From Oopsacas minuta (Eukaryota; Animalia; Porifera): DNA of 64,000 bases. The stretch lies in contig JAKMXF010000066.1 of NCBI GenBank assembly GCA_024704765.1, forward strand, positions 1,237,883 through 1,301,882, read 5' to 3'. Positions 29,370-64,000 of this stretch are shown one piece after another. Every line of letters begins with the position of its first letter. The stretch's first letter is position 1. Made by a program: the position numbers and the translations under genes. The notes below the pieces were generated by a model. The model saw only the letters and a program-made list of their open reading frames with translations. It made no database searches and had not been told where the DNA came from.

Positions 29370-31223
29370 ATGGAAGAACCAGATGAAGTAACACTCGTAT
29401 TCAATAAAAATTTCATATTTGAAGAACCTCTTCCAACAACTAGCATAGACTTCAAACCGCCATCGATTCTCCCAAACCACCAATTCACAGTAAAACGACA
29501 ACACCGTTCATCAGTTGAGGATAAAGTAGCACGTATCCGTGAGGAAAATGAGAAATACAACTCCATGACGTCACAAATACCATCAGAGTCAGAATCAAGT
29601 GAAGATGATACAACCACGGATACAGGACAACCATTCTTTTCAAACTATCCAAGCGGTGGAATCAATAGTTTTTCAGACATGTCACTCAGTAGACCCTTAC
29701 TTAAAGCAGTGAATCAATTAGGATTCGCTGATCCCACCCCAATACAGTCACGTGCTATACCAATAGCATTAGCAGGTAAGGATATATGTGGGTGTGCTGC
29801 TACAGGTAGTGGTAAAACAGCTGCGTTTTTACTGCCAATACTAGAGCGTTTGTTATACAAATCGAAAGAGCATGCGAGTACACGTGTACTGATACTAAGC
29901 CCAACTCGTGAGTTGGCGATACAAACTCATACGGTAAGTTTACAGCTCTGTCATTTCTCTGCTGCTATACGCTTGTGTCTAGTAGCTGGTGGGATCGATT
30001 TACGTGCACAAGAACGTGCAGTACGAAACCGCCCTGATATTATAGTGGCCACACCCGGTCGGCTAATTGATCTACTACATAACACGCCATCATTCGACCT
30101 GGGAAGTCTGGAAGTATTAGTATTAGATGAAGCTGATAGAATGCTAGAAGAGCATTTTGAACTTGAGCTACAAGAAATTCTACGTTTATGCCCGAAACAT
30201 AGACAAACATTATTATTTTCCGCTACTATGACAGATCAGGTTGAAAAACTAGCTAAATTATCTCTACAGAAACCAGTTAGATTATTTGTGGATAAAAACA
30301 CGGATGTTGCCGCTACGTTAAAGCAAGAATTCATTCGTATACGAGCTGATCACGAGAATGATCGTGAAGCTATGTTATATGCTCTTTGCAAAAGAACATT
30401 CACTTCACGCTGCCTCGTGTTTTTACCTACGAAACACCTAGCACACAGGTTACACATTTGTTTTTCATTGTTAGGCATTAATGCAGCTGAATTGCATGGT
30501 AATCTTACACAAGCACAGCGAGTTGAGTCGTTAGAAAGTTTCAAAAAGGGTGATGTTAATTTCCTGCTAGCTACAGATCTCGCAGCACGTGGCCTGGATA
30601 TTGAAGGAGTACATACGGTTATTAATTATAATATGCCAGCTACTTTACAGCAATATATACATCGTGTCGGCCGTACCGCGAGGGCTGGACGATCGGGGAG
30701 AGCTGTGTCACTTGTCGGAGAGAATGGTAGGAAAGTTTTGAAAGAGGCTGTGAAGGGGAAACATCATCAAACTTCCGTGAAGAGAGTTGTACCTGGATTT
30801 ATTATAGAAGCATGTAAGAAAGAATTAGAGAATATATCAGAGGATGTTATTAGAGTACTGGAAGAGGAAAAGGAGGAGAAGGAGATGGCAGCTGGTGAAA
30901 TGGAGATTAGAAAAGCTGAAAATTTGATAAAACATCGTGATGAGATAGCAAGTAGACCAGCTAGAACATGGTTTATCAATAAAAACGATCGTAAGACGAA
31001 ATCTAAAGGAAAACCACCAGATAAGGGAATTGTTATTAAACAGAGATTAGCTAATAAAGTAGCTAAACGATCTGAAAAACCGAAAAGATTGAGAGTATTT
31101 GGAGAAGAAGGTAAGAAGAATAAACGAAATAATAAGCGTAAACAGATTGGGAAAGTTGATAGAAATATCCACAAACAAGAACCTGGAAAACGAAAAAAGT
31201 TTAACAAAATATTCAAGAAATAA
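29370..31223 (+). CDS. DDX27: DEAD-box RNA helicase DDX27/Drs1 (60S biogenesis), intronless
   Basis: Q motif FSDMSLSRPLLKAV…PTPIQ, AATGSGKTAAF, PTRELAIQ, LDEADRML, SATM, HRVGRTARAGRSG; RPARTWF and a lysine-rich tail are typical of DDX27. Confidence 0.93.
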   Translation: MEEPDEVTLVFNKNFIFEEPLPTTSIDFKPPSILPNHQFTVKRQHRSSVEDKVARIREENEKYNSMTSQIPSESESSEDDTTTDTGQPFFSNYPSGGINSFSDMSLSRPLLKAVNQLGFADPTPIQSRAIPIALAGKDICGCAATGSGKTAAFLLPILERLLYKSKEHASTRVLILSPTRELAIQTHTVSLQLCHFSAAIRLCLVAGGIDLRAQERAVRNRPDIIVATPGRLIDLLHNTPSFDLGSLEVLVLDEADRMLEEHFELELQEILRLCPKHRQTLLFSATMTDQVEKLAKLSLQKPVRLFVDKNTDVAATLKQEFIRIRADHENDREAMLYALCKRTFTSRCLVFLPTKHLAHRLHICFSLLGINAAELHGNLTQAQRVESLESFKKGDVNFLLATDLAARGLDIEGVHTVINYNMPATLQQYIHRVGRTARAGRSGRAVSLVGENGRKVLKEAVKGKHHQTSVKRVVPGFIIEACKKELENISEDVIRVLEEEKEEKEMAAGEMEIRKAENLIKHRDEIASRPARTWFINKNDRKTKSKGKPPDKGIVIKQRLANKVAKRSEKPKRLRVFGEEGKKNKRNNKRKQIGKVDRNIHKQEPGKRKKFNKIFKK

Positions 31224-31572: not shown

Positions 31573-31647
31573 TACATTCACTTGTCCTGATATACAGTTA
31601 AACATTCACTAACTTTTAGTAAATTCATATCTTCCTTTATTCTTAGA

Positions 31648-32169
31648 ATGTATTATAGATATCTCAAACTTTTAAACTCTACTCTCCTACCAATCAAATC
31701 TTATAGAAAAGTCCATTCCATTTCTCAATACCAAAATCCCACCAAATTCTCTCTTTCTACTCCCTCAATACAAACCATTACCCCTAACAAACACTACACC
31801 GCTATACCAACATTATCCATTGTCCAATTTGAACAAATATCTGAGAATACACTACAATCCCTCACAGAGTATTTTGACTCATTACCAAGCCTTGTACAAT
31901 GCTCTAAGCAGTATGACGTCAATTTCGCAGATGGTGTACTTACAATTATTGTTAATGATGACATAGGTACTTATGTTATTAATAAACAAACCCCTAATAG
32001 ACAGATTTGGCTATCTTCACCTATCAGTGGTCCGAAGCGATTTGATTTGGTAAATACACGTTGGATATATTTGCATGATAATTCTTGTCTTCATGATTTG
32101 TTGCAGAGAGAATTCTCTGATATTTTCAAGATTCAGCTTGTATTAGATAAAACTAGGTCTTTTATATGA
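31648..32169 (+). CDS. FXN: Frataxin with N-terminal mitochondrial presequence, intronless
   Basis: DVNFADGVLTI…GTYVINKQTPNRQIWLSSPISGPKRFD is the frataxin signature; basic, Ser/Thr-rich N-terminus. Confidence 0.95.
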   Translation: MYYRYLKLLNSTLLPIKSYRKVHSISQYQNPTKFSLSTPSIQTITPNKHYTAIPTLSIVQFEQISENTLQSLTEYFDSLPSLVQCSKQYDVNFADGVLTIIVNDDIGTYVINKQTPNRQIWLSSPISGPKRFDLVNTRWIYLHDNSCLHDLLQREFSDIFKIQLVLDKTRSFI

Positions 32170-36220: not shown

Positions 36221-36314
36221 TATCATGTCCGTTTTCCAGAGGATGGACCTTATATACAGTGTTCTTATAACAGGCATCCACTGTATTATGAATTAATATA
36301 GCATACTATCTAGC

Positions 36315-38216
36315 ATGACAGACTACATACAAGACTTCCCTAAAGAAACACTGGAGAATATGGAAGGACTCTGGCGTAACGGTCAGCTCTGTGATGTAGA
36401 GCTCCTAGCTGGTGAAGCTGTAATACGTGCCCATAGAGTTGTATTAGCTGCGTCTAGCTTATACTTCAGGGCAATGTTTACGTCACAAATGGCTGAATCA
36501 GGACAACGCACTGTAGAAATACAAGGAGTAGAAAGCTCAGCTCTACAAGCACTTGTTTCATTCGCATACTCAAGCAAACTTTGTGTCAACACTGATAATG
36601 CACAGGGATTATTGGTAGCATCGAATTTCCTACAAATGTCAAGGGCGAATACAATTTGTTCTAAGTTCTTACAAGAACATCTCACCTCACAGAATTGTCT
36701 TGATATCGCGGATTTCGCGGAAGATCATCATTGTCTTGACTTGTTAGAAGCCGCAAGTCGATTTTGTCTAAAACATTTCACAGACGTATCAAAAATGGAT
36801 AAATTCCTTCGCATTTCAACTCGCCGTTTAGACCAAATACTATCAAGTAATTATCTCGAATTACCAGATGGAGAGGATATAGCATTCGAAGCACTTATAC
36901 GTTGGGTTAAAATTGACCCTAGCAACCGTGAGGAATTTTTCCCTGATCTCTTAAACCTAATTAAACTCCCATTACTCAGAACTTTATTTTTCTCGTTAGA
37001 AGTTTGTGCAAATACTTTAGTATCAAATAGTGAAAGTTGTATGAATTTAGTGAGAGAAGCCGCGAAATGTATGTTTGACGAATCTGACAAAACAAGTCCA
37101 GCACATTTAAAACGATTACCCACACAAATACCCAAAAAATGGTGGCCTCGCGAAACTTTACGCGTTGGTGAGGTTATTCATATTTTAGGCGGGGTTTCAG
37201 AGCATGACACGTTAGGAAATGTTGAATGTTTCGACTCAACAAGAAACGAATGGGTAGTTAATGTTATACCGCAAATGACGCATAAACGTAGTGGCGTTGG
37301 TGTAGCTGTTCTTCACGGGTTACTTTTCGCGATCGGCGGATATTTAGACGGTAAAACATCTACAGACGCGGTGGAGTGTTACAATCCGCGTACACGTATA
37401 TGGTCACTAGTAGCCCACATGCATACAGCACGCATGAACCTTGGCGTATCTGCTATACCCGATTTAAGAGATTCTGATACAGGAGCAACCTATAACTTCG
37501 TATTTGCCGTAGGCGGATATTCAGGTAAGGTAATTCTAGGTAGTGTAGAGAGATATGACATGATGACTGACGTATGGCATGAAGTCTGTCCAATGAATAC
37601 CCCAAGACGTAACGTGGGTGTTGGGGTTATTGGCCCGTTTTTATACGCAGTTGGTGGTTCAAATCGTGATGACGGTAGTCGTTCAAATTTAAATAGCATG
37701 GAGAGGTATGACCCGATTAATGATACGTGGACGGAAATGCCCCCGATGAATAGGTCAAGAGGTGCCGCATCCATCGCTGCATTAAACAACTGTTTATATG
37801 CTGTAGGAGGATATGACAGTGGTCAGTGGCTTAATGAAGTAGAACGTTTCGATCCACAAGTTGGCCAGTGGACATTAGTTGCTCCATTGAATCATTGTCG
37901 TACTGGCATAGCTGTAACCGCGTTAAACGGGGAAGTTTATGCTATAGGAGGCTATGATGGAGTAAAAACGGTTGATATCGTAGAGAAATATAACGAGAGG
38001 ACCGGAAATTGGTCTGAAGTAAGTCCGTTAAATTGGGGGAGATCTGTACCAGGTGTAGCAGTCAATCACCTATGGCCTAGCATACAACAGCAATTGAATC
38101 CAGCTCCCAATAAAGTACTAAATGCTTGGGGGAAACCAGTAACAGCAAGCAATCCACAAACACAATTAAATCAACGCAATTTTTTCAATTCAGACAGCTC
38201 AGAATCAACGCTTTAA
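36315..38216 (+). CDS. Kelch-like protein (BTB-BACK-6x Kelch; Cul3 adaptor), intronless
   Basis: BTB LCDVELLAG…AHRVVLAASSLYFRAMFT; BACK domain; six kelch repeats with GG-Y/S…VE.YDP…W…PM…R; closest KLHL paralog not resolved. Confidence 0.95.
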   Translation: MTDYIQDFPKETLENMEGLWRNGQLCDVELLAGEAVIRAHRVVLAASSLYFRAMFTSQMAESGQRTVEIQGVESSALQALVSFAYSSKLCVNTDNAQGLLVASNFLQMSRANTICSKFLQEHLTSQNCLDIADFAEDHHCLDLLEAASRFCLKHFTDVSKMDKFLRISTRRLDQILSSNYLELPDGEDIAFEALIRWVKIDPSNREEFFPDLLNLIKLPLLRTLFFSLEVCANTLVSNSESCMNLVREAAKCMFDESDKTSPAHLKRLPTQIPKKWWPRETLRVGEVIHILGGVSEHDTLGNVECFDSTRNEWVVNVIPQMTHKRSGVGVAVLHGLLFAIGGYLDGKTSTDAVECYNPRTRIWSLVAHMHTARMNLGVSAIPDLRDSDTGATYNFVFAVGGYSGKVILGSVERYDMMTDVWHEVCPMNTPRRNVGVGVIGPFLYAVGGSNRDDGSRSNLNSMERYDPINDTWTEMPPMNRSRGAASIAALNNCLYAVGGYDSGQWLNEVERFDPQVGQWTLVAPLNHCRTGIAVTALNGEVYAIGGYDGVKTVDIVEKYNERTGNWSEVSPLNWGRSVPGVAVNHLWPSIQQQLNPAPNKVLNAWGKPVTASNPQTQLNQRNFFNSDSSESTL

Positions 38217-39401: not shown

Positions 39402-40327
39402 ATGTCACAAGAAAGTGCAACATATTCCTCACAGAGTAATAATATTGACGTCACTACAGTGCCTGTAATACAATACCTAAAAAATAATACGTCACAACAA
39501 GAACACATTAACACAGTATCTACTGAAACAGCTGATATCAACTACCAACCTATGGATATAGATTCTACAATGGAATGTCTCACAGGACTGAGATTAAGTG
39601 AATCATATTTGAGTACAATTACTGAATGCGGTATGTTCCTATTATAACTAGCTCGTTTTAATCATGCACTACAGAGTACCCTTAAAAAGATCAATTTGGG
39701 GTCAGGCCATATTGACCCGATTAGGGTGGTTTGTAGTCCAATAACTCGGTTTACCTGTGGCTCTATTTCAGCGGTTCCTGACCTTATTGATCTGTGGATC
39801 CATATACCTATTTTAATACATTTTGTGGACCCCTCTACTGTCGTGCGTGGATCACCAAGGGTCCATCGAGGTTGGAACCGCTACTCTTTTTAATCTGAGT
39901 ATACTGTATTCATTAAGTAATTTTGTTCCAATTCATTCAAATTTCAAAGTAGAAACTTTTCGTTGTTTATATTACTTTTTGTTTCCAATTTCACTGATTA
40001 GTTATTAATCCCTATATATATATATTTATAGACAAAAAGGACAATCCTGTATCACCCCAATCTGAGCAACACTCTCCTAAACTTCATTCAAATTTTATAA
40101 CAGAAGACCATCTACAACAAATACAACAACAACAGATCTTCTCTTCATATCCCACCTGTAGAGATCAATCCTCTTACAACCCAAATACACACGAGATTAA
40201 TATAGAGAATAGTTCTACAACAGAACATCTAGATGATACTACAGTAGAGGATATAGCTGGTTATCTAGAACAGTTGGAAATATTGTCTAGAAATATGTCT
40301 AGCATGGCAAAAATGATGTATTCTTAG
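39402..40327 (+). CDS. OSER1: OSER1 (oxidative stress-responsive serine-rich 1, DUF776)-like; exons 39402-39630 and 40032-40327 (174 aa)
   Basis: G|GTATGT donor and TTTATAG acceptor join in phase 1; C-terminus DTTVEDIAGYLEQLEILSRNMSSMAKMMYS* matches the OSER1 terminal motif D.TIEDLSGYMEY.L.IPKKMSHMAEMMYT. Confidence 0.75.
39769..39883. mobile_element. hAT (Charlie-like) MITE in the OSER1 intron
   Basis: TIR CAGCGGTTCCTGACCT…AGGTTGGAACCGCTA; 8-bp TSD CTCTATTT/CTCTTTTT. Confidence 0.75.
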
Positions 40328-41229
40328 ATAATCATATATGTTATGCATATATTATCTCAATAGTTTGTATCTTATTGTGTACTGAGAAATTGAGTGTTTG
40401 CAATGAAACGCGCTTATATACAAATTTGATTTATAATACAGTGGAAATTGGGAAACTGATAAATGGGAATTCGCTGAATTAGACGAGGTTTTTGAAATGG
40501 ACTCGATCCAAAATAAATCGGTTAATGTAGCTTAGTTGCACTTATGCTCCTATGTCTGGGTAGGAAAAGATGACGTCATGGCAATACTCTGGTGGAGCTG
40601 AATCTGGATGTGCACTCAAATTCAAGGGTGAGCAGGTTCCAACTCAAAATGGCTATAGCTACGCCTATGCTTGAGAGTATCGGTTAGTTTGGGCGAAAAC
40701 CATACTCCAGGCGTCCCCTACAATTTGGAAATTTATTTGAAATTTTTGTATTTTGTTCAATTTACTAGTTTTGACATTAAAATTCTATGATCCCTCGTTT
40801 ATAACCTAATTACATGATTCATCATAAAATACGTTGTGAATCATCATTTTTTCTGTCCTAATCATGTCTAAATATCCATTATGTAAACTCCACCCTTGCG
40901 GTCTTCCATTTTTCATTATTTCTACAAAAACAACACGATTTAATTGCTAAAACTACATTTTCTGTAATATATTGCATCCATAATCTTTACTGATATAACT
41001 AATATCAGTTCTGGATTATCTTTTCCTTGACGCACATTTGCTTACTTAAACCATATTTTAGCATCAAGCATTATAGTAATATTATTATCACTAAGGAGAT
41101 AGGGGATTACTGCTGTATTAATCTTATTATTAGTTTGACTTCATTAATTATCTTATCAACGCAAGTTGTTATCTCTTGGCTAGATGATCTATTGTCTACT
41201 TATGTAAATTTGATTATTTTTTTGTTCCT

Positions 41230-41760
41230 CTTAGCGCAAATAGTATATTATTATCTGCAAGTATGTTTTTACGACAATGTAAAGATTTCTATGTTGATTA
41301 TTTTTGGCATTTTACCTATTTGTATGTACATTGTTTCATTTCGAGCTTATTTGATGTATTCTTTTTCTATGTAGATCACTTGGTAAATGCAAAAATGGAT
41401 TTTCAGTATTTATTCTAGCAAACGTAAAATCTCTTATTGTAACTTGGCTAACAATTTTTTGCAAAATTTAATACTCAACTTTCCAATGTACTAATATACT
41501 TTTAAGCTTCCATTAACCGTACATTTGTAACTATGTAATTCAAGGTTAACAATCATGAATCCTTTGGTGGCGATGTCAGTACTGTATCCACAGCTGTTCC
41601 ATACAACGTAGTTAATACATTACAAATTCCCAACCTATTCGTGATGTATTACTGTATTTCACTTTCAATGTATTATTCTCAGCTAACAAGGCTGTGTATA
41701 ATCGCTGATTCAAACATAATGTATTTATGAATTATCTAGTGTGAATCATCTGTATTTAGC
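41230..41760 (-). pseudogene. Possible decayed coding relic, unassigned
   Basis: Minus-strand stretches such as YITNRLGICNVLTTLYGTAVDTVLTSPPKDS and RDFTFARINTENPFLHLPSDLHRK are separated by stops. Confidence 0.2.
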
Positions 41761-42450
41761 ACCAGACTGTTAGTCAGCTTCCCTGAGCACGAATATTTCA
41801 CTAACATATGTGCAAATAATATTTCAAATTCGCTAACCTGTCTTATTTCTATCTAGTAAAATTCAAAAATAAATTGCTTAAGGACAAACGTATGAATCTT
41901 ATTAGCGTTACAGAATTCTGACTTTTGAGAAGAGTTTTCTCATTAATGTTATTTGTTCGCTCCATGAATGGAGAAAATAGGGCCAATGATAATATGATAA
42001 TTTTACTGATTTTATTCTGGCAGCCTCCTTGGCTCCTTCATGGACTTACGTTGCTCCACTACTTTTTTTTATAAGCTTGACACAGGAAGAGGAGGGCGTC
42101 AAAAATTAGGGATCTAGCATTAGCGTTAACTAGCTTCTGAACGCCCCATTCATAAATATAGGAAATCACTAAACAGGATAGTTATTGTTTAGTGGTCTCG
42201 AACTTCGATATTAAGAATAAATTGAATGAGATTGAATGCAAGTTTCATTGTAATACAATGTAATCGCTGCACAATATAAACCGCTAATACTTGATTATTA
42301 CCATCCATAGTCCAAAATGTATTATCCTATTCAACTTATACAACTGTACATTGATTTTCTATAAATACTACGACACGAAATTACAACCAACAAAAGTAAC
42401 TGAATATATAACATTTACAATTATCAATTGAATTCAAATACAAACTCATT

Positions 42451-45400
42451 ATGTCTATAATAACTTCATTCTTCCCTTCTATATTTGCTTGCATTCGTCC
42501 AAACCAGCAAACTTCAGCTCCTCTTCGTTCCCAATCTTTCGACTTTTTCAATTCTCTCGATTTTGATGAAGACACTGGAATAATAAGAAATCGCATTACC
42601 AATACAAATAATAACGAAAAGAAGCGGAAAAATAGACATACTTTTCTAAAAAGTAGTTCTAGGAAAGGAAAAGCTTCTCTCTCTTCCTGTATCGGAACAC
42701 GCAGCAAGAACAAGGATGAAAAATCAGAGCAACTTTGTAAGTTAATATATCCATTAATTATTGGTTAACGAAGTGGTGAATGCAAATTAGAGCTAATCTT
42801 TCATAATTTGCAATCAAGCTAGTTACATTGCTGTTACACTATAATTCAATTATTCAAATACTATAGCTGATAGAATTCCCTATTCTGTATATTATTCAAA
42901 TCAGCAAATTTAAGCTTTACCGCTAACAATAGAGTAAATTATGTATCTCAAGAATTTTTTCTGATCTACTTATATATTCGACTTTATGCTCCAATGGAAT
43001 ATCTGAATTCTATAAATGTAATCATGGCGTTATCTGATAGATCATTGTGAATAACTTAGTACAAAAGCATTACATTTATATTATATTTCTCATCATATTT
43101 TGGTGGAAATTCCCTAAACGCTGCTATCAACATTATGTTAAGTCCCTAATAATTACTTTATCAGATAGAATCCTTATTCAATGAGTTTATCTTTTCTTGC
43201 GCATGAACTCGCAATCTAATTATACATTACAGCATTTACAAGTACTGAATAGGAAATACCCAATTGGACAGATAATCGCCCCCAGCAGGGCCTAGGCCCT
43301 TTCTGCTAATTCAAACCCAGGTCAATTTACATACAACTCTCCCTCCCGTTCATTCGGTTACCTCAGGTTAACAAAATTCATAAGTTTAGGTGTATTTGTA
43401 GATGTAGGACAGGAGTACCTTTTGTATTAAACCTGATATATACCCACTGAAATAGTGTATAGTTACTCAAAAATTCATACATATCGTACAACAACTTGCC
43501 ATGTCTGCTGCTAACACACTTGAGCCTGCATATATCATCATTGATGACGGTTTAAATAAAATAATCTTACGGTTTCAGGTATAGCAGGATTATATGCTTA
43601 TACGCGTACAAGGCAGAAATATCAGAAATATTAATATTTTGTGAGAACTTGTATTTTCATAGAATTCAATGAGAGTTTAATCTGCATTGTTTTGCTTGCT
43701 CCTTAACGTCTAAAACACTTTTTACAGCAAATGCAATGGTATCATTGCACAAGTTCCTTTTGGGAGTCTAAATAGTTACATGATACGTATGTAGGTCATT
43801 TATTGTTGCTGAACCATTCAATACGTATCATTACGTATTTCATGGTCTAACATTCAACAATACTATTTCATGTAATACTTTAACCCAGCTCGTCACACCT
43901 GAACGAATCCAATTTAATTCAAATGGAATGTTAGCTTTTGTATAATTTCATCATATAGCAATACGTATTCTTAATTGTAATACACTTACAAGTCATGAAT
44001 ATGAAATATTTTTTGAACTTTCAAATAAACCTCAAATTTTCAGTTTTGTGGAATGCAATTCAATGGGAATCGCTTCTTTTATAACGAATAAGGATTAGGA
44101 ATTTCAACTATTCTTTTCCGTTGGTTTTCAACAAGATTCTACACTGTATTTAACATATATATTTGCTGTTTAGTCTAACTCGTGTTTCACATACTAATCT
44201 AGGATAATTAAGTATTTACGTTTGATTCTGCAATAAATATAAGTAAATTATAATAAACGCAGTTGTTTGGTATCCTGTTGTTTAAGTCTACGTTGCATAT
44301 TAGTTCAAATAGATTGAAAGTTTGAAGTTAAAAATTTTCTTGTGTGGTCGATTTTGGGACAATTTTATTCATTAACAAGTATTGCGTCTTGTTACAGCTA
44401 ATATTTAATGTTTTAACAGACAATTATGTGAGGTTTCCAGGCAAAACAAAAAGCATTCAAGAATTATATCAAGTTCGCATCTTTTTTTTGTGAAGAGATA
44501 TCATATAAATTACGTCTAGTCAAGTTATGCACTCAGTCGATAACACTTTTATCCTGCTATTTAAATCATATACAAATCCTGCTATTTTCCGTTGTAATGT
44601 CTAAAAGTCGACAGATTATTATCTTTTCTCAAATATTATCTTTGTAAGTTCATTCATGTTATACTTCTCACACATTGAATGAATGATGGGTATTAGAGCG
44701 TTTAATTAATTTGATAAACTTTTGTATATTCATTGGCCTAGTAAGATATGGATCGTAATGATATTTGTAGTAAGACCTTGAATAGCATTGATAATATATT
44801 GTTGCGTATTTTTCCCAAGTAACCCAGGGTATTTGGATATTGTAAATCATTTAACGTGTTCGGAAAATCAACATTTCAAAATATCGTTAGCATTGTACAC
44901 AGTGGAACCATACGAACGTCAAAGAACTGTCAATTTTTTTTCGCTTTATCCGGAGTGTTACCAATTGAATAAACATTATAGGGGCCTGATTTTGTGTAAA
45001 TAATTGCTTATCAGGAAATTCGTAATAACAAGGTTCCATTGTAGTTATATATATTTCATTCTACTAATAGCTTGTGGGCTAGAAGCTAGAGTTACCAATG
45101 ACTTCATGCAAATACGACCAGAACCTGAATCTCCTAAGTCAATGTCTGATATTTCTGACTCAAGCTCCAGACAACTCATTAGTTCTACTAGCACTGAAGG
45201 ATCTAATGAGAGTCCTAAAAGAGTAATACGGCCACGAACTGAAGTAAGTTATTTGTTTGTGTTTGTTTTTTACAATCTATTTTTAAAATATACAAATATA
45301 AATCTACTCAATAAATTATCAGGTGTGTGTTCATCTAGTAACAATATTCGATTTATATCAAGTTGCTTTTTAGGAATTTAGAATCCCTTTCGTATTGGAA

Positions 45401-48400
45401 ATTATATTGAAAATATGTCAAATACCCCTTTCATAAAGCATGTTTTGATCTTGCTCTTGAATCACTTCATCTCATGGATTTATTGTTTACGATGTAGGGA
45501 AAAATAAATCGCCACGATGTGCGATAATTTGTGATTCTTCATGCTCTGAGAATCAATAACATATCCCAGATGACCTGTGTGGAAGATATTATAATGCTCG
45601 AAAATGCACAGCATTGTTATTCAATTTTCACTAATTGTAAATACAGGTTTTAGAAACCTAAACACTAGAAAGATCTGTAACATAGAAATCCAATATATTG
45701 GTTGTTAATATTATATTCAAATTATATGAATTCCTATAAAGATAGCTTCATCATGCGTGAGATCTTCATTCTTTAAGACTTATGCTAACCTGCAAGCTGT
45801 TTTGTACGGTTTAGTTTGGATTAATTTGGCTTTGAAGACATTAAATAGCTTCCTATGGCTGATGTTACCTTTTCTGTATTCATTTTCCATGAGTGGTGTA
45901 TTAACATATTTCTGAACATAATCCACCAAACATTCTCTGATTCCGTTTTGGATAACAAATGCTTTAATTTAAGTTATTGGTGATTATTCTATAGAAACCC
46001 TCGTGGTTTTCTCGGAAGATCACACAATTTTGCACACTAAATAATTCTTTGGGAAATATTGTACTTACCCAGTCATTCAATAATCATCCGACACTGAATT
46101 TTCCCCAAACTACAGACTACAGTGGAGTTCGCATATTAGCAAGCCTTATTTTGCATGATTTCCCATTGCTAATAGAAGCGAACACTACTATATTACCATA
46201 TGTATGGGATATTATTAACATTTCCTAACAATACAAAAAGTGCTATTATAAATGGATCTAACATTTGAAAATCTACCCTCGTAACCATATGGCTAGTATG
46301 GAATACAAACTAAATACCACATTCTTTGTTAAGAATAGGAATCATTCAACTTCCCCGAGCATTATATTATCCTTACAAAAGATATTTGTATTGAAAACAT
46401 AACACTATATAATCGTCTCATTGTCTACCGTTTACAATAGTAAAATTCCAATTATCATATATCGAGATAAACTTGTTCAGATAAACTGTATTATCACACT
46501 GGAGTTTGAGTTCAGAATTTGATTCATATTGTAAAGAAGTATCGAGTATTTGTTCTGTAATCTTACAGCTTATCTAATACGTAGAACAAATTTACGGACA
46601 TGCTAATTACATGTTGAACCTATCAATCGCCTTTTGACAATGTGTTACTTCGTAATTCCAGGTGCATACGGTTGCTGATACGAGTTTGTAGTGTGCAGAT
46701 GTTCGCGAGATAATTTCCTTTGAAAGTTAATACATTTATATGACACGAAATCTGTTCTTTGTTTAAGTAACACTGGTTTGGAAGGCCTTGTGCTCTTGTA
46801 GCGTTCTTTTAATTATTTTTCGTTGGGCTTTATCAATTGTTTTGACTACAGTGTAACATTGACGAAGTATTAACGAGGTTACATCGTTAATACGAAAAGG
46901 GTTGATCTGAATTTAAAATATTTCTACAAAACTAAGTCCCTGGAAAGAATGGTATTACTCCGGTTAATACGAACTCTGGATAAAGCAAACGAATTTTGAC
47001 CATCCATTGGTGTTCATATTAACGAGTTTCCGCTGTAAAGTGTATACACTTTGTTCATAAGAACAACAAACAATTTATGTATGACGTGATTTTTCTTTTG
47101 TCCAATATTTAAGTAATCAATTCATTTTATTGGATTCTCGTGCTTATTCATGAATTTCCAATATACATTATGCCAGAACCTAACACGAATAGATTCAAAT
47201 TGTTATCGCCTTAACGATATAACAAACAAATATTCTCCCTTACTAATTCATTAAGTAATTGGAACCATTCTAAACCAAACTTTGATTCAATTTGGCGTGA
47301 ATTTGTACGGACATTGTCTACTTAACTCGTATATGGTACGACCATCTGTTCAAAGATACGTTTATCTAAACCAACAGTATTCTACCAACTTTCTAACCTC
47401 TTAGCAATTGTCTGGCACATATAAGTCGAACTCGAAACCAGTATGTCATCTAACTCATCATATCTAATTATTTGGTCTTATTTCACTACAAATTTTACTG
47501 TAAATTCTCTTACAAAGCTCACTTGAAGTGAATTATAAATTTATACGATCATTAAAGAAGTCGAACCTCGATCGTTGGCGGCCCTAAAAACCAATTTTCT
47601 TGATAAATGACCCATATAACAAGCTCGTAATTAATTTGTACTTAGCCGTATATTAAACCACAGTTCTCTCACGAACTTAGTATTTTGCATTTAATAATAT
47701 CATCAGATATTAACCAGAAAATGCCTACTCTACTTATTCTGGTTCAACTACTTCCCACTCTTCTCCTAGACATGCCAAAACTCCAAATACGTTGCTATCT
47801 CGTCGCTGTAATCTTGTAATGAAGTCTGATAATCCTTTGGTCAGAAATTAGCTTTGGATCATATTTTGAATTAATTATCAAGTAGCTCTTGAGGCCAATA
47901 TGACATCCCTTCGGTTACCACTGTACCTTTGTTAATGAAAGCACAAATTATTAAAATTTACATATTCAAACCGAAGTTACCATAATTTCTTAATCACTCT
48001 TTAATTAGTAAAATTATCAGATAATAATTCTACTTGATTCCAAAATCTTCATTTGCTCGAATTGGGACTAAGTGTTTTAATATTGGAACAATTACGAATA
48101 CAAATTCACAATTACTTATGTTATATGGCATACTGCGCGTCATCTCACTACTGGACTCTACATGGACGCCAAAACTACAGGTTACAGGGGTGGAGCACTT
48201 AGATATTGAGAATCTAGTCTCTACTGCTTACTATCATTAGCGGGGGTTGGACCTTTAAAGTTTGAGGTTGTATTTATTTGAAATTTACTTAGAGTTAATA
48301 GCAATTTCGCTTGATGTCCCCAATTGTATGGATGATGAGCTGATAAGTTCCTACGTCTGCTTGACATCCACATATACTTTTGAATAAATATAGTTAGCAT

Positions 48401-51400
48401 TGGTGGCTGTATGGTCCTGATTTTATATTGTCCAATTATCCAAACGTGAGTATACTCATCAAATTACACAATTTTGTAAACTTGCTAACATTGTGTTGAC
48501 ATAATACCCCTAAACCTAGCCATACTACAAGTCATCACCCTTTGATCTAGGTTCAATTTGATACACATCAGAAGTAATGATATAATGACTATTGCTGTGT
48601 AATATTTGCTTATTAATTGAGTTGTACTACTGTTTACATAATATTGGTTTTGTGAGTTAAATGACACATTATTCTTATATAGTTAAACTTTACTGATGAG
48701 GATATCGATGATATCAAGGCTCTCACATTACAACTTGTGCTCTCTTGTATTCAGTTGAAAGAGATTATTGAGAGAGCTGAAGTTGATGAATATGTTTCAA
48801 GAGTCAAGGTATGTTTATTCACATTAAACCTATTGGACATGACATGACGTAATTTAGTTTTTCAAATAGTGAATATCAACATAATTTTAGTAGAACTCAT
48901 TTCCTTATTTGCTGGTTTCGCTTCTGGCCAATTAACTGGATTAACCGTTGGCTCTTTTATCGGAGTATACTGTCTTTGATTTTTATGGGCCATACTTAGA
49001 GAGGAAGCGCATTCCATTCTTTTATCCACCAGCAGAATTGTCTTTACTTTGTAACCTTATTGGTGTTCTACGTACTATTGATGATAACTTTTGATAAGTA
49101 ATAATGATTAACTGTACAATAAGCGCCCACCATCCAAATTGTCTCGTAATATTCAAGATATTCATCCAAAAATCTCTAGGGAATGGAGATCAATCGCTTA
49201 AATGTATATGTAACACATTCTCCTTTTGCTATCCCTTTGAATATGACGCAATGCCAATACAATATATTAGTTTCTCTGTGCGTTGATTCTAAATGTCAAG
49301 TAATTGACTAATGATAATATGCCAGTAAACGTTGAATCAATTCACTTTCTCAAGCATTTATTGGGCTGCAGAAGTTGTAGACATCCATAAATGTAATAAT
49401 ACGCAAACACAGTTTATACTATTTTCATTATTTAGCATTTTTCAATATTATTTGTTTGTTGCATCATTTATTAATTGAAATTTGTTTATCCATGGCGAGG
49501 CAAAAATTTCCTGAAAATATGTGACTTTTTAGATAAGCTCGTTGTCCTATTGACTTATTGTATAGAAAGTCAGAAAGCGTGACATATAAGAACAACAGAC
49601 AAATTACAAGATGTTGTCCATACAAGAAACAATTCAAATAACCAATCAATTAAGTGTCTAACACTGATAACAGTTCAACTCAAACGTAGCCATAACTTTA
49701 ACCATTTTGGTATCCAAGCAACTAATCCCACTATATTATGATAGGAACTCTCAAACAATACATTCTCTATCTAAATACATTAGGTTTCCCATTCAAATTT
49801 GTTATACTTTAACCTATAATTGTTTACCTCATAAACCTGGACTATCAACGCTTACAAGGCCACTGTTAATGAGAAATTGTTTCAGCTCCACATTAGATCC
49901 ACCTGAACATGCATACGGGCGGGCGGTTCATTATCATAATCTCATTATTTTGTGAGGTATCAGCTGGAAAATTGGTTCATTGACTTCATTCATAAAAATA
50001 TTATAATTACTAAAGTCAAATTTCATTTGGCCAGAAACAGAACAATACAAATAGTGTTAAATTACTCAGGTTAATCGGGCCAACACCTTTATTTCGCTTA
50101 ACCGGGTCTAAATTGCCTGATCCCGATGTAGCCTATTAAGCAGAGTCTACAGCATTTCAATTCCTTGCTAAGTTCTCCAATAGTACCATAACAAGATATT
50201 GCAAATATATGATAACGTATTTCATGGTTTGCACTTTTCAAAGTTTGCATCACATTATTTATAAGATCATTTATACTTCCAAGTTAATGGCAATAGTTTT
50301 CTTCCTGAATAGCACATGCCTGGAATATTGAATCATTACTCTCAGTAATATGTTAAGGATAAACATATGATAATTTCTGATGTTTTAGTGCCCAAAAAAT
50401 AACCTCGCTATAGTATTAATGAGATCATCGGGTCATCATTTGATTGTTGCTTAAAAATTGTTGTCAACTATTGATAGTTCACGAATAATGTTGTCTTAAT
50501 GAACGACTGTACTGCGAATTACATTAAACTTTAGAAAACGAAACTTCAAACTTGGTGAATACGCATGGTAGCATTTGGTATTTTGGAAGATTCAAAACTT
50601 TGGTTATCACTATTACAATTTTATGATAGTTGAGAATTATTACGTTGAAAATGGAAATTTATTTGATTACTTTTAAATATCCTTACTCTCTAATTATTCA
50701 TCAAAATTAGAGTATGTGATAGTCCAATACAGACTCGCTAATTTATACATTTTCTATGCAATGTGCTTAGAGTCGATTCTGGGAATATTTAGCAACGAGC
50801 GATCAGTAAAATAATAATGACTTTCATGATTACTGCCTGAACATTTTGATTACCATCCCATCCAATTAGGATGTCTGTGAGTCATTGAAATCATTGCTGA
50901 TTCGAGTGACTGAAGAAGTGGAGCAGATGCCTGACGATGCAACAGAAGAGTCGAAAAAAGTAAGTTGCTATTTTCGATAAAATGCTAACAAAATTATCAC
51001 TAATGATTTTTGCAATATGGAATAGAAATGCTTAATTTCGTCAATTTTGAATTTGTTATTATAAATGAAAGCATATTTCTATTCTATCTAATCGTGATTC
51101 GAAAATTATTCTGAGATGAATTGAACTCTATTTTACAAAATTCTTCATTATTACAGAATTGCACAAATAGTTCCATCATAAATTACAAATTCAATTCCCA
51201 GCTGTTGAAATATGCTGTAAATTCTTCTATTCACTAAATCTGGTACTAATAAAAATGAGGTTTAATTACATTTATAAATCCATCAATGATTCTCTTTAAA
51301 TATTTGTATTGAAAATGTACAGTTAGCTCCCGTTATGACGTATATCGGAATGCCCTCTTATATTCTCTACAATTGTACAAATGAGGAGCCAAACCTTCAA

Positions 51401-52647
51401 AGTACATTTCAGCGGGTCTATCGAAGCTCATATTGAATAATTTTCGCGATCCCTTGAGCTACGATATAGCAGGAGTTAACCTGAAATTGTTTTAATGTAT
51501 TGGAAATTATTTTGAATGCAACGAAACTCTAACTATCACAATATCCAATATCCCATTTATATCTTTGATATTTGTTTACGAGAATATGCTAATTGTTTTT
51601 TAGTTTTAAACTGTTTCAAAGTTCAACAATAATCAACTAATTACAGTGAAAATTAATAAAAATAATTAAACGAGGCAGATTAGAGAAATAATTAACCTTC
51701 AAAACTCTGTTATTTTTATTCAGTTTACCCTCATTTCAGACTACAAATCATTCTCCATTCAAATCATCACAAAACAATAACACAGTATCTTGTGTTAATC
51801 CCACCAAGAACCACGCATTTATCCCAATTAATTATCATAACACGATCTGTTGAATTGAGTACATACATCATAATACTTTGTCTAGCTAAACCCCTCCCAT
51901 CAATCTGCATTGGTTCTATCATAGTTTATTTCTGCATAACTATTATCTCACCCACGCATTGCTGACACTCGAGTACTTTTTTTTATGACAAAACACATAA
52001 CCATCAGTTACCAATTTGACGTCATTCTAATATTGAAACAATCATTTCAAATAATTGGGTCCTCAAATATCAAGTGTAAGCCCTACTCCTCTTGTCTACT
52101 TCATGCGCCCAAATTAGCTTTACCTTATATCGGGAAAACCCCAATTTTCACGCTACTAATATCTCTTGCCCGCAAATAGTACGCTTATAGAGCGTCCCAT
52201 ATTCATACATCGCCAGAATACTAAATTCCTATTTTATATTTTCACGTAATCGCTACACTTTGTCATATTAATATACACAATAGTTAGTCCCAAACCAAGG
52301 CCTGTAACTAATTGAGAAATTTTCAAAATTTATCTCCAATATCTATTACTTAAATACATTTAGCTAATCACGATTCTCTTAACATCTAATCAAATTACCT
52401 TTTACCATATTTCCACATATTCATGATAATTATTCTACACAATTTATAATAGATGCAGATGGCTCAAACACTTCTACAAACACAAATGAAGACATTAGTA
52501 CAGACAATGAAACAAGCACAAGAAAACTCACATTTAACAATAGCCAGTCACTATACGAATCAGTTTCTACAGAGTTGTGTGCATTTAGCTGTCTATACGA
52601 AACATTTCTTACAAGCTTTTCTTGCTATCAGTACATTTGTGTGCTGA
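42451..52647 (+). CDS. Kinase-less FAT (focal adhesion targeting) domain protein; exons 42451-42736, 45071-45243, 48683-48808, 50870-50959, 52453-52647 (289 aa)
   Basis: All four introns are GT-AG with compatible phases (1,0,0,0). The last three exons give …IKALTLQLVLSCIQLKEIIERAEVDEYVSRVK DVCESLKSLL…MAQTLLQTQMKTLVQTMKQAQ…HYTNQFLQSCVHLAVYTKHFL, aligning to the FAK FAT (…EEYVPMVKEVGLALRTLL…MAQKLLNSDLGELINKMKLAQ…EYKKQMLTAAHALAVDAKNLL). Confidence 0.8.
46100..47880 (-). pseudogene. Decayed ORF antisense within the intron 45244-48682 of the FAT gene, unassigned
   Basis: Long protein-like stretches broken by stops and frameshifts (FLTKGLSDFITRLQRRDSNVFGVLACLGEEWEVVEPE; DELDDILVSSSTYMCQTIAKRLESW*NTVGLDKRIFEQMVVPY); interrupted by a MITE. 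Confidence 0.35.
46849..47035. mobile_element. Tigger/pogo-like MITE
   Basis: Clear right end ATTAACGAGTTTCCGCTG-TA; degenerate left end TA-CAGTGTAAC; internal TATTAACG repeats. Confidence 0.5.
51320..51483. mobile_element. MITE (family A) in the last intron of the FAT gene
   Basis: TA-CAGTTAGCTCCC…GGAGTTAACCTG; core TAATTTTCGCGATCCCTTGAGCTACGAT. Confidence 0.6.
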
Positions 52648-58729: not shown

Positions 58730-59577
58730 GTAAAAGGCTAAGAGAAATATAGCTGAAAGATCGTATTATTCTAATCAATATAAGTAGAATATTGTATGGA
58801 GATATTTAGCGAGATTTACTTGCAGGATGTAGCATGTTAATGATAATCTGGCCTAAAATACATACAAAATGTATTTATCACGTTTCGGCCGACATGACAC
58901 TCAACAAATGTCACAAAAAATGGGACTGGTTTCTTTGATAATACTACCAAGTCAGACTCAAAACATTGGTTAAGCACATCAATTTCCATATAAGGAGTAT
59001 AAATACGTAACTACAAATATCTTCAAATATGTAAATGAATTGATAGTCTTATTTGTAAATTAGTCTGGAAATTTTGTATTCCCTGTACCACTTTAGTATA
59101 GACAAATGACAGATCGGCCTATAGACAACGATTGATAGTTATTAATATGGAAGTAAAGGTTCTGGTATAATATATGTAACTAGATATTCAAATCGTATAA
59201 TACCAAACTGTATTTCAAGAAGTCTATATGCTTAATTAATATGTTAATCTAAAATACAAATTTGCTTTCATTGTGATTTACAATTTTAATACATATTAAG
59301 ATAAGTGCAATATTGCTTTTTGACTGTTTTCAATCCAAATTTCTTATTACACAACCAATTAACTGTTGGGTCTTTCAACCGATATGTAACGCCATATTAC
59401 TGACGATCTGACATATTTTCCTGTTGCATGCATTTAGACAATTTTAACCTTTTTGAAGCACAAACGATTGGTCAAAATTATCACTATGATAATCTCGTCC
59501 ATTTGAGAGCGTTACTTAAGGTTGAATGACACTTTTACTATGAATTTTCAAATAATTAATATAATTTTAGCTTTGCA

Positions 59578-62500
59578 ATGGATTGCAGTCCAATTCAGTC
59601 AAAGAAGCTTATTAAGAGATGTGTCTCTAGTCATTGTAAATTTAATGATAATTTCCCTAATGGAGCCCCCAATTCATTTAAAGTGTGCCCAATGTGTGGA
59701 GAAAACCTACAGTTTGAAGATGCCGTATCAATTCCAATTTCCAAACCACAATGCGAAATTATATCGAAACCCAAGGAATCCTTGGAAGAAACAAATTCTC
59801 TTTCGTTTCAATCTTCTAGTCTCAAGATAATGTTCAAAACAATCATGTTTCTAGAACATTATAAGTCTATCAATGGTAATCTAACGCTGAGGTTTAATGG
59901 GGTTTCATTTGGTAATTTAAAGGAGGACACCACATGCATGAAACTAACTGAGAGAATCAAATATGGAGAGAGAGATTACATTTTCCTGGAGGGTTGTGTA
60001 ATTATACCTCAAGAAAACATAAGATTTCATTCAAGAAGCTCCTTTGAGATTTCTTACAAATACTTTCTAAACGGTAAAGAAGAAAATCTAGGGCAAGGAG
60101 ATAAATATAACCGCTGCCTCTATATTAGATGGGGAAACTTACAAGATAACATAATTGATAAATACGACACCATGGTATTGCCAAATGAAATAGGAATGTT
60201 AAGTGATATAAAATTAGGGAAAAATTCATTCCACTTATTTGCTAACCATACATATATTAAAGAAAAATTTACCTTTGAAGAACAAGTTTTAACTCTCCAA
60301 ACTATATCACAAGGTATCTTCTCTTCATATTTGGGAGTTAAGGACGACTTCGTTAACCCTGAGGTTGAGTCTGTTACACGATGGATAGTTAGTGAGATAA
60401 AGATAGACAAGTCCTCCGAAAATTTACTAAGATTTTTGATATTTTCATTGCTTTTGGTACGCAAGAGAAAACCTGAAGAAGAATACAAGAAACTTTTGGA
60501 AAAAGTATTAAATACATTCACTTTGCATGATATAGCATATCTAATTGCCAAGAAAATTTTCTTCTTTGAAAACTTTCAAAATAGTGAAAAGACAATTCAA
60601 AATTTGCAAGAATGTTTTGATAATATTATTTTTACAGGCTCTCCTAATGTCTCAAGCAAACACTTAATAACGTTTCTACCATTATACCATTGTATGTTTA
60701 AATTTTCAAATCGATTTGTAATATTCCATAAGCAGCAAGAAATACTCGCTAATGAATACTGGGGCTTCCCAGCCAATATCGATACTAAATGTTGTTACAA
60801 TTTTCAGGATGTGAACTATTGTGAATCGGCTCTAAAAATATTGAGGGATTATGATCCAATTCTACCCTACAGTATTGTATTGATCACAATAAGTAATGAA
60901 AACTTTCAACAATTTTCCTCAAATATTATCAACTATCAGTATTTATTACCAGTTCTTGTATATAGAATAAAATCCTGGCCGAGTGACTATACACCAATGC
61001 AATTGAGGTGTCAGATATACTCATATATGATTTCCAAACTCCATGAAAATCAACAATTTATCACTGAATCAGACCTCTATCTAATGTGTGAATCAATTTT
61101 CTATCTATGGGAATTAGACGATAAATTCATCGATACGGATATTGTATTTTTACACCTAACATTAACAGTAAAAATATTACAAATGCTGGAAGAAATTCAG
61201 CAGAATATTTTATCAACTAACGATTCTGAGTCATTTTTCGTCAATACAAAACATTTCAAATCTTCCTCAGAATTAATTTTGATTCTCATTCAAAAACTTG
61301 ATTCATTTCTCAATATTCGAGATACAATAAATTTTGAGATAATTATCCAACGAATAAATGTATGGGATTCATTGTTTTCACTTGAATTTCCAAACACTTA
61401 TAATTGGCAGCAAGTAGTAGAAAAGCAATTCTTACTGGCAATTCAGGATTTGAGTGATACTATTCAGCTAAAAGTTTTCGTATATTTATCAACAAACCAT
61501 AAGTTCGGAACAAAAATACATTCTTGCTTTAAATTTCGCATCATAGATTTACTAAGTCAGAAACAAGACCACGCCTCACTGGAAATCATTTTGTCAAATC
61601 TTCTACATCTACCTATAACTGCAGAACTGCTCGAAATCCTAAATGTCATTTACAAACAACAAAAAGATACTTTTGAGGAGAATCCAACGTCTCACATTCT
61701 CTCTTGGACACCATGGCAAATACTCTTTAAATTCTCGTTACACGGGATTGAATATAATAGCTATGGAATAACTCAACAAGTGAGACATGCTGAAGATGAG
61801 TTCGTAATTATTCTCCAGTCTCTAAAGCAGTCAAACATTCAAATGAAGAATCTGAGACATCTTAACGAAGGTAGGGAGAGGTTTTTATCTATATTTGACA
61901 CACTCACTTCTAGAAATATAATTCGTCAAGCAGAATTCGATCGAGCTAGTATTGAAGATGTCATTCAAGTTTCTAAGGAAAAATTATACTTTTTTGACGA
62001 GCAAACTGAATTAATCCTCAATTTCATTTGTATCCTCAATTTCTCTACTCACCTCTTAGAGTCACAAGAATTAAAAGATTTCTTGAAAATAGATTTTGAG
62101 GCGCAGCCACTAAACGAAATCTGCAATGGAAATTTGCCCGTTGATTATCGCATTCTCCCAAATTCAATCCTAGCGACTAATCTAAATTTGCCTCATATTC
62201 AAAGAATGCTAAACGCGTCTTTTCATTTGAGAAAATCTAATGTATTTTTGAATATTTTTAAAAGAATAGTATTGCGCAAATACAATTTTAGTCAAGCTAA
62301 GATCCTTGATATTCAGGAAGTTTACGACGAAATTTGGTACCCTGCATACCTGAAATGTGAAGTTATAGTGACAGCTTTGCATAATCGCAAAATTCGTTTA
62401 GTGAATGTTGAAAAACATTTCAGCATTTTTCGAGAAGCTAAAGATAAGATCAAGCATGAAATTTCCTGTCTATCCTCTGCAATTAGTATAATGAAATTGA

Positions 62501-64000
62501 AATTCCGAAATCCTGACGAAGAAATCAATAACTCTGCTAGACTGATATTTAAATATTTCCAACTCCAAGAATCCTCAAAAGTAGCTACCTTAATTTATCA
62601 AGTACATGTACATTACTGTAAAGAAGGAGACTTTGTGCAATTAGATACACTAGTTAACCTACAGAAGGAGCAATTCATTACAGAGAATACCTTGGAAATC
62701 ATTACAGTAGAGTTAGAAACGATATTTGCACAAGTAAATAAGTTCGATTCTTTCGCTGAATCTCTTCTCAAAACTTTTCTTAATCACCCAAATTTCATTC
62801 TTTGGGCGAGAGCTACATTGAAAGATACACAGCAAGTGAAAGTTTTCGTAGATTTAGCACTAACATCTTGCGACGTAACCGACTTCGATATCAACTGCAT
62901 TACATGCCTGCGTTCAGTCTGTAATACTTTAGCTCCCCTAATATTCGACATGAGCCCAAATTGTAATTACGATCAATTCATAAACCTTTTCAATCAAGTG
63001 ATTGATCAAATAGTGGATAAAAAAGGGTTTTTGAAAACTTTCAATGAAGCTGCTAACTTGCTCCATATTTGGAAACATTTAGAGCTTGCCCATAGTTCAG
63101 TGGGTAAAAGTACAATTCAGGAGCTCACAGACATCTTCGAAGTGGGATATTTTGAGGTTAACCTTGACAACAATGGTGGTGATGGAAATATCCACCTTTA
63201 CATACAACATTCACCTATTAGTCGGGTATATAACTTGGAAAATTTGAAAGATCTTCAGAGTAAAATTGCATTGATAAAAGCAGAATCAAATGCTACGCAA
63301 CATATAAAATTATTCACATCAATTTTCGGATATATCACTGAAATAAGCCTGATGGTTGAAAAATTGAAGTATCTTGGCCATATTTCGTATGTTAATTATG
63401 TTAAGCAATTTAAATGCCAGGCTGAAGCTATCCCAATACTTAAAAGTGAGATTGAGTTGGGAAATGCAGAACTAAACACCTGGAGTGTCACTTTAGATTT
63501 TGCACGCAACAAATTCTATTCCCTTAACTTCTTCACTGATTTACAAATTTTAATTCTACGAAGAGATTTGAGTTTGTTTCAGAGAGAAACTATCCTCAAT
63601 CCTCAAATCATTCATCTTCTTTCTATGTTAAACCCTAATGTTACAAAGCAAGAAATTTCGAGAGGACTAGCAACTATTTCAGATTCACTTCCAAGTGAAC
63701 AATCAGAAAGTCGACCAATGGCAGACAGTTTACACGAAGAGATAGTTGACAATAGTGGATTCCCCGAATCTTTTCCTGATACTTTCAATGAGACCGATAG
63801 GCAATTTTGTCAATCTATTTGTGTAGAGGGATATTTGGATTTAACATTATGTATTATTGGAATTCAACAATTGAAACGCGATTCAAATGATTACGATGAA
63901 ACGGACCTCCTAGAATTTTGTTTGAACAGTACAGAGTTGATTGGAGGTAGTAATGAAGAGATTGAGGTTGATACTACTAGCAGTGTAGATTCAAATTTGG
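59578..64000 (+). CDS. RNF213: RNF213 (mysterin)-like giant AAA+/E3 protein, N-terminal part; the ORF runs off the window end
   Basis: Hand translation shows an open frame from ATG 59578 to 64000 (1474 codons, no stop). RNF213-like blocks: LKDTQQVKVFVDLA…FDINCITCL…LAPLIF, YNLENLKDLQSKIALI, RNKFYSLNFFTDLQILIL. The AAA and RING domains lie beyond the window. Confidence 0.8.
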   Translation, partial: MDCSPIQSKKLIKRCVSSHCKFNDNFPNGAPNSFKVCPMCGENLQFEDAVSIPISKPQCEIISKPKESLEETNSLSFQSSSLKIMFKTIMFLEHYKSINGNLTLRFNGVSFGNLKEDTTCMKLTERIKYGERDYIFLEGCVIIPQENIRFHSRSSFEISYKYFLNGKEENLGQGDKYNRCLYIRWGNLQDNIIDKYDTMVLPNEIGMLSDIKLGKNSFHLFANHTYIKEKFTFEEQVLTLQTISQGIFSSYLGVKDDFVNPEVESVTRWIVSEIKIDKSSENLLRFLIFSLLLVRKRKPEEEYKKLLEKVLNTFTLHDIAYLIAKKIFFFENFQNSEKTIQNLQECFDNIIFTGSPNVSSKHLITFLPLYHCMFKFSNRFVIFHKQQEILANEYWGFPANIDTKCCYNFQDVNYCESALKILRDYDPILPYSIVLITISNENFQQFSSNIINYQYLLPVLVYRIKSWPSDYTPMQLRCQIYSYMISKLHENQQFITESDLYLMCESIFYLWELDDKFIDTDIVFLHLTLTVKILQMLEEIQQNILSTNDSESFFVNTKHFKSSSELILILIQKLDSFLNIRDTINFEIIIQRINVWDSLFSLEFPNTYNWQQVVEKQFLLAIQDLSDTIQLKVFVYLSTNHKFGTKIHSCFKFRIIDLLSQKQDHASLEIILSNLLHLPITAELLEILNVIYKQQKDTFEENPTSHILSWTPWQILFKFSLHGIEYNSYGITQQVRHAEDEFVIILQSLKQSNIQMKNLRHLNEGRERFLSIFDTLTSRNIIRQAEFDRASIEDVIQVSKEKLYFFDEQTELILNFICILNFSTHLLESQELKDFLKIDFEAQPLNEICNGNLPVDYRILPNSILATNLNLPHIQRMLNASFHLRKSNVFLNIFKRIVLRKYNFSQAKILDIQEVYDEIWYPAYLKCEVIVTALHNRKIRLVNVEKHFSIFREAKDKIKHEISCLSSAISIMKLKFRNPDEEINNSARLIFKYFQLQESSKVATLIYQVHVHYCKEGDFVQLDTLVNLQKEQFITENTLEIITVELETIFAQVNKFDSFAESLLKTFLNHPNFILWARATLKDTQQVKVFVDLALTSCDVTDFDINCITCLRSVCNTLAPLIFDMSPNCNYDQFINLFNQVIDQIVDKKGFLKTFNEAANLLHIWKHLELAHSSVGKSTIQELTDIFEVGYFEVNLDNNGGDGNIHLYIQHSPISRVYNLENLKDLQSKIALIKAESNATQHIKLFTSIFGYITEISLMVEKLKYLGHISYVNYVKQFKCQAEAIPILKSEIELGNAELNTWSVTLDFARNKFYSLNFFTDLQILILRRDLSLFQRETILNPQIIHLLSMLNPNVTKQEISRGLATISDSLPSEQSESRPMADSLHEEIVDNSGFPESFPDTFNETDRQFCQSICVEGYLDLTLCIIGIQQLKRDSNDYDETDLLEFCLNSTELIGGSNEEIEVDTTSSVDSNL

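Follow-up and report, generated by a model that had tools for sequence, protein, structure and literature searches.

A stand-alone glass sponge gene for a FRNK-like FAT protein, likely a non-catalytic docking protein

Focal adhesion kinase (FAK) is older than the animals and counts as a core component of signalling from integrin adhesions. In vertebrates a promoter inside the FAK gene PTK2 also yields a C-terminal, non-catalytic product, FRNK, which acts as a dominant-negative inhibitor of FAK at focal adhesions, and the analogous product of PTK2B is PRNK. To our knowledge FRNK is the only well-known kinase-less form, and it arises in vertebrates as a by-product of the kinase gene. In the glass sponge Oopsacas minuta we describe a gene that encodes a FAT domain and no kinase (contig JAKMXF010000066.1 of assembly GCA_024704765.1, around 1.27-1.30 Mb). 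It lies in an analysed stretch of 64 kb, which we call the window and from whose first letter all positions are counted. Gene structure, expression, conservation in at least two other hexactinellid assemblies and domain identity are established here, and it is quite probable that the gene, which is independently transcribed, spliced and protein-coding, has a product that docks on LD motifs without catalysis. A separately encoded and conserved FAT-only protein would show that a targeting module can be a gene of its own, and it would offer a natural test of FAT function in the absence of a kinase. Our searches brought up no paper on a FAT-only gene encoded separately, nor one that discusses the present gene, which GenBank and UniProt list as an uncharacterised entry. 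A search of the literature on FAK in hexactinellids and on FRNK outside vertebrates returned nothing relevant.

The gene has five exons on the plus strand, chained from the stop-free segments between 42.4 and 52.7 kb. All of the introns run from GT to AG with strong donors (GTAAGT or GTATGT) and the phases are compatible. An earlier sequence-only reading of the window had proposed five phase-compatible exons. The 289-residue translation is identical, letter for letter, to that of LOD99_15040, which NCBI annotates in O. minuta as a hypothetical protein over the same range as that reading (42451-52647) and whose product UniRef automatically names "Focal AT domain-containing protein". An acceptor for exon 2 at 45083 was rejected because it results in an in-frame stop, and 45071 is the sole in-frame option. 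The locus was aligned with its counterparts in metagenome scaffolds of Vazella pourtalesii and in the ENA assembly ERZ25069837, hereafter the third species. Exon 3 has the same length (126 nt) and phase in all three species, exon 4 is contiguous in the protein from the Vazella transcript (P0004), and the product of exon 5 is 95% identical to the Vazella protein.

The four-helix FAT domain is complete, as had been claimed from the sequence, and it is a member of the Focal_AT family. The Pfam profile for this family (PF03623) matches residues 160-280 over profile positions 7-124 of 133 with 65.9 bits (E 4.5e-18, cut-off 23.3). Exon 5 alone gives 34 bits, which is above the threshold, and the Vazella orthologue gives 63.3 bits. 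Among sequences in the PDB the only matches at E<=1 are the FAT domains of FAK1 (E 2.6e-10) and Pyk2 (about 5e-6), with FAK1 the closer of the two (43 bits, versus 29 bits for Pyk2). In an AlphaFold2 model of residues 150-289, made with three orthologues, there are four long helices (model residues 9-34, 38-65, 71-101 and 104-124; predicted template modelling score 0.56). When the PDB is searched with Foldseek, the top 32 matches are all FAT domains of FAK or Pyk2, with template modelling (TM) scores of 0.57-0.64 and 23-31% identity.

Transcription and splicing in O. minuta can be followed in Logan contigs from four public runs (X1-X4), which we compared with positions 41000-46900 of the window. 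No RNA run is among the runs listed; X1 is probably the source of the assembly, X3 and X4 behave as DNA, and X2 was judged to be RNA-derived from its spliced, exon-enriched contigs. The depth of the X2 contigs is 1189-3486 on exons 1 and 2 versus 13-44 on introns and upstream sequence. One of them joins 42736 to 45071 with GT..AG ends, which is the predicted junction of exons 1 and 2. The first position covered by the high-depth contigs is 42423, 28 nt ahead of the start codon, where the loose end consists of Illumina adapter and not of another exon. From 42204 to 42423 the run is nearly empty, and in the region compared its contigs have no joint toward any upstream place. The RNA-derived contigs thus support the first junction of the proposed exon chain and locate the 5' end approximately.

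A second species provides a fuller transcript. In the Trinity transcriptome of Vazella pourtalesii (EukProt), one isoform encodes the 287-residue orthologue P0004, whose N-terminus is likewise MSIITSFFPSIFACIRPNQQ and whose five exons lie at homologous positions in the Vazella scaffolds. Intron 1 or intron 3 is retained in the remaining isoforms, which include P0001 and P0009. Of these, i6 begins within intron 1 and gives a 206-residue protein that lacks the N-terminal element, and i5 reads into intron 3. Both may represent unspliced precursors; alternatively, i6 may be the product of an internal start, which if true would echo how FRNK arises.

The FAT gene of O. minuta stands alone, and five independent lines of evidence agree on this. 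An in-frame stop at 42409-42411 lies 13 codons ahead of the ATG and there is no AG dinucleotide in between, so an upstream coding exon cannot splice in frame ahead of the ATG. In the three-species alignment substitutions sit at third codon positions from the ATG onward, while upstream of it the only conserved stretch is about 14 nt. A TATATAA at 42405-42411, which includes the in-frame stop, is 12-18 nt before the first high-depth X2 contig; it is not retained at the corresponding place in Vazella. We found no tyrosine-kinase motif in the six frames of the window or in the orthologous loci. Likewise no FERM-coding sequence is annotated within the 10 kb of annotated flank upstream, and residues 1-153 have no Pfam match. 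Back to 29 kb the upstream sequence is taken up by five unrelated genes on the plus strand, and before them come giant open reading frames (ORFs) on the minus strand. NCBI annotates an RRM protein, a BTB-Kelch protein and a 174-residue protein upstream on the same strand. The proposal of a separately encoded, kinase-less FAT protein, with no FERM or kinase exons upstream, is therefore upheld by the conserved start codon, the spliced contig, the transcript from a second species, the conserved gene order and the nature of the neighbours.

The protein is laid out as a 43-residue N-terminal element, a linker of about 110 residues and the FAT bundle. The N-terminal element matches no Pfam family. 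In it, a hydrophobic stretch whose Cys14 is invariant precedes the acidic and aromatic sequence SQSFDFF[ND]SL[DE][FY]DE[DE]TG. Beyond this element the protein has a KKRK cluster, then SCIGTR and two Ser-Pro-Lys sites, which are conserved, and finally SDSSSRQL. A hydrophobic N-terminus that holds Cys14 and lies beside a polybasic cluster suggests membrane attachment, although the KKRK could equally be a nuclear signal. The sequence-only reading had described a basic, Ser-rich stretch before the FAT domain, and residues 44-153 fit this description with an isoelectric point of 10.2 and 26% Ser+Thr. This linker is probably disordered.

Codon alignments of the three orthologues, all of which have canonical splice sites and identical exon phases, show that the whole protein is under constraint. 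The ratio of nonsynonymous to synonymous substitution rates (dN/dS) is 0.08-0.14 for the whole protein and 0.12-0.22 for the linker. Between O. minuta and the other two species it is about 0.05 for the FAT domain and 0.01-0.04 for the first 43 residues, with the synonymous divergence (dS) in these comparisons saturated at about 1.5. The N-terminal element is thus the most constrained region of the protein. From this pattern of substitution we take the gene to be functional and not a decaying fragment.

The comparison with FRNK shows both likenesses and differences. Like FRNK, the sponge protein has no kinase, has a probably disordered linker followed by a four-helix FAT bundle, and by alignment keeps the residues that contact LD motifs. 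Unlike FRNK, it is encoded at a separate locus, between the 174-residue gene and a TRAF gene, with its own start codon and probably its own transcript start. Its linker has none of the PxxPx[KR] motifs that bind the SH3 domain of p130Cas, and the equivalent of Tyr925 is missing. It also opens with the conserved 43-residue element, which has no counterpart in FRNK, so the sponge protein is more than a bare copy of FRNK. Strictly speaking it is not FRNK, since the gene is separate, the linker differs and there is an additional module at the N-terminus, but it is FRNK-like in architecture and perhaps in action. Nor is the protein a member of the FAK kinase family, since the FERM domain, the kinase domain and Tyr925 were all looked for and are absent.

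Compared with the FAT domain of FAK itself (PDB 1K05, 1OW6 and 2L6F), the sponge domain has about 30% identity with the human and chicken proteins and the same four helices, with a TM score of about 0.6. It differs in a loop between helices 2 and 3 that is three residues longer, in a hydrophobic C-terminal tail, and in having Lys in place of Tyr925 and His in place of Glu1015. The correspondences of single residues were taken from HMMER alignments to human and chicken FAK. I936 and I998 of FAK are the hydrophobic cores of LD-binding faces, and they align with I176 and V241 of the sponge protein. The basic residues that flank these faces, K955, R962 and K1002, align with K195, K202 and K245, and L1034, which is critical for targeting, aligns with F277. 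The predicted paxillin-LD contact positions are conserved in this alignment, both hydrophobic patches and flanking basic residues included. Two other positions are different. Y925, the Grb2 site (in the YENV motif of FAT helix 1), corresponds to K165 in O. minuta and is also Lys in Vazella, which agrees with the earlier statement that the Tyr of YENV is absent at the aligned position; E1015, needed for talin binding, corresponds to H258.

These features can be put together in a tentative picture of what the protein does. Most likely the FAT bundle would dock on scaffolds that carry LD motifs, within adhesion complexes that are integrin-based or otherwise cortical, and docking of this kind is favored because both hydrophobic patches and the flanking basic residues are kept. 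The protein would then act without catalysis, either serving as an adaptor or competing for LD sites, and would bring, or block, whatever the N-terminal element binds. Localisation and regulation would probably come from the N-terminal element and the Ser-Pro-Lys sites, with Cys14 possibly attaching the protein to a membrane. With the Grb2 site, the talin-linked Glu1015 and the SH3-ligand motifs missing, those outputs of FAK would not be passed on. The sequence-only reading had suggested an independently evolved FAK antagonist or adhesion adaptor. The adaptor role is plausible because the sponge protein keeps the hydrophobic and basic residues with which FAK contacts paxillin LD motifs, while the role of FAK antagonist and an independent origin are conjectures.

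Several alternatives to a separate FAT gene of the FAK type were considered. One is that 42451-52647 represents only the 3' part of a longer FAK gene with overlooked 5' exons, for which one could point to a pyrimidine-rich stretch followed by CAG inside exon 1 (42467-42506), resembling a 3' splice site. We rejected this internal acceptor because the stretch changes synonymously and with codon periodicity across the three species, and its CAG is CAT in the third species. The stop ahead of the ATG, the Vazella frame that begins at the same Met, the X2 contigs that end in adapter and join nothing upstream, and the unrelated genes and missing kinase motif in the upstream sequence all argue against such a gene as well, and we consider it very improbable. 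A similarly slight chance is given to the idea that the bundle belongs to another family of FAT homology, such as the C-terminal domains of Cas, GIT1 or CCM3/PDCD10 or the vinculin tail. The p130Cas C-terminal, GIT1 paxillin-binding and CCM3 C-terminal domains do share the general fold, and their known members bind LD motifs. A look-alike search of the ESM Atlas also returned clusters of CAS_C, PDCD10 and GIT1_C at 0.82-0.87, below the 0.9 threshold for a lead. However, Pfam up to E<=10 lists only Focal_AT and no CAS_C, GIT1_C or PDC10_C, the sequence matches in the PDB are restricted to FAK and Pyk2, and p130Cas first appears at Foldseek rank 33 (E 0.045, 14% identity), so that both profile and structure separate the sponge domain from these families. 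The domain does not score better as a CCM3, Cas or GIT bundle, and the assignment as a FAK-type FAT stands.

The origin of the gene is less clear. One FAK and one paxillin are present in a demosponge (PMC6820919), which places FAK in the sponge ancestor. The FAT gene could be a FRNK-like paralogue in glass sponges that keep a FAK with FERM, kinase and FAT domains, where it would compete for docking sites and damp FAK signalling. This is a good possibility, if somewhat short of an even chance. The linker and FAT domain without a kinase parallel FRNK, the LD-contact residues are conserved, and the FAK of the sponge ancestor also speaks for this origin. An exhaustive search of 1.84 billion representatives with exon 5 (64 residues) returned only the Vazella cluster and two repetitive false matches (P0002 and P0003), a query too short to reach true FAKs and thus covering close paralogous FATs and not sponge FAK. 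The lack of a second close FAT in that search fits an old rather than a recent duplication. A word-index search with the Vazella protein returned O. minuta and Vazella only, within a length window of 158-502 residues that excludes full-length FAKs. Against a paralogue stand the N-terminal element with no FRNK counterpart and the paper on the O. minuta genome, which reports integrins and in its text and supplements mentions none of FAK, paxillin and talin. The other origin is a truncated orthologue: the ancestral FAK would have lost its FERM and kinase parts, and the remnant would have been re-used as a non-catalytic adaptor with a new N-terminal module. We hold this possibility more tentatively. 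It is consistent with the O. minuta genome being reported to lack key metazoan core genes (PMC10280926), and with a HMMER alignment to FAK that extends weakly into the linker before the FAT domain (query residues 137-160). On the other hand, there is no remnant FERM or kinase exon in the 42 kb upstream, which fits either loss or a retro- or duplicative origin. A FRNK-like paralogue and the sole remnant of FAK thus appear roughly equally likely. It is possible, but rather doubtful, that hexactinellids have no full-length FAK and only a FAT protein with a new N-terminal targeting module, as part of a wider shift to domain-only adaptors. If glass sponges do lack FAK altogether, the gene would mark a rewiring of integrin adhesion signalling in this lineage. 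Glass sponges are syncytial and have unusual junctions.

Some points weigh against our reading of a separate gene for an LD-docking FAT protein. The confidence of the AlphaFold2 models, as the predicted local distance difference test (pLDDT), is only moderate for the domain (66.7) because the alignment holds three close species, and the value for the whole protein (40.6) is too poor to judge whether the N-terminal element docks on the FAT bundle. In O. minuta the junctions of exons 2-3, 3-4 and 4-5 rest on the annotation and the Vazella transcript and not on reads from this species, and Logan contigs cannot fix a transcript start exactly, which makes 42423 approximate. LD binding is predicted from an alignment with vertebrate FAK in which about 30% of the residues are identical. 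The coordinates of the gene and its nearest neighbours are collected in Table 1.

Table 1. The FAT gene of O. minuta and the genes on either side, in positions of the window
Feature	Position	Strand	Remarks
Probable 5' untranslated leader	42423..42450	+	X2 high-depth contigs start at 42423; start approximate
Exon 1: ATG, residues 1-95 and one base of codon 96; N-terminal element, KKRK basic cluster	42451..42736	+	donor GTAAGT
N-terminal 43-residue element, coding	42451..42579	+	first 18 residues invariant in three species
Exon 2: Ser-rich linker, two conserved Ser-Pro-Lys sites	45071..45243	+	RNA-derived joint; conserved in Vazella and ERZ25069837 species
Exon 3: FAT helix 1, start of helix 2	48683..48808	+	Focal_AT profile positions 5-42
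Exon 4: remainder of FAT helix 2, loop to helix 3	50870..50959	+	90 nt, kept in three species
Exon 5: FAT helices 3 and 4, stop codon	52453..52647	+	Focal_AT profile positions 71-124
Upstream neighbour: two-exon gene, 174-residue protein of unknown family	39402..40327	+	NCBI gene call
Downstream neighbour: TRAF-type zinc finger / MATH protein, 436 residues	55596..57090	+	NCBI gene call, Pfam

The gene order upstream is conserved. The 174-residue gene is directly upstream of the FAT gene in all three species, and the third species also has the Kelch gene, so that the order Kelch, 174-residue gene, FAT gene is kept. The sequence-only reading had named the 174-residue gene OSER1, but the protein has no Pfam match and the name is unsupported. 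Between the Kelch and 174-residue genes of the third species lies a Tc1/mariner-type transposase (HTH_Tnp_Tc3_2 + DDE_3; L008:3980-4939), which is absent from that place in O. minuta. Downstream the order is rearranged: the FAT gene is followed by the TRAF gene in O. minuta but by a Rieske-domain gene and WH1-only genes in the other two species (L001:12471-18551; L005:7517-11311). A 4.8-kb ENA contig, ERZ26869290, holds two inverted copies of a Vazella-type exon 5 about 660 nt apart (L006:2043-3093), which are probably a palindromic assembly artefact.

The rest of the window is dominated by intron-free genes. Three huge ankyrin-rich ORFs on the minus strand (4676-13135, 13654-24888 and 24885-27227) encode 2820, 3745 and 781 residues, and the first of them ends in a membrane region like that of TRP channels. 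On the plus strand a giant intron-free ORF at 59560-63999 runs off the end of the window; its NCBI model has 4864 residues and an RZ-type zinc finger (RNF213-like). There are also single-ORF genes on the plus strand at 2794-3996, 29286-31220, 31591-32166 and 36297-38213. The last is a BTB-BACK-Kelch protein by Pfam, and the other three resemble, by translation alone, a histone-deacetylase-like protein, a DEAD-box helicase and frataxin. With five exons and introns of 2-3 kb, the FAT gene is unlike these single-ORF neighbours.

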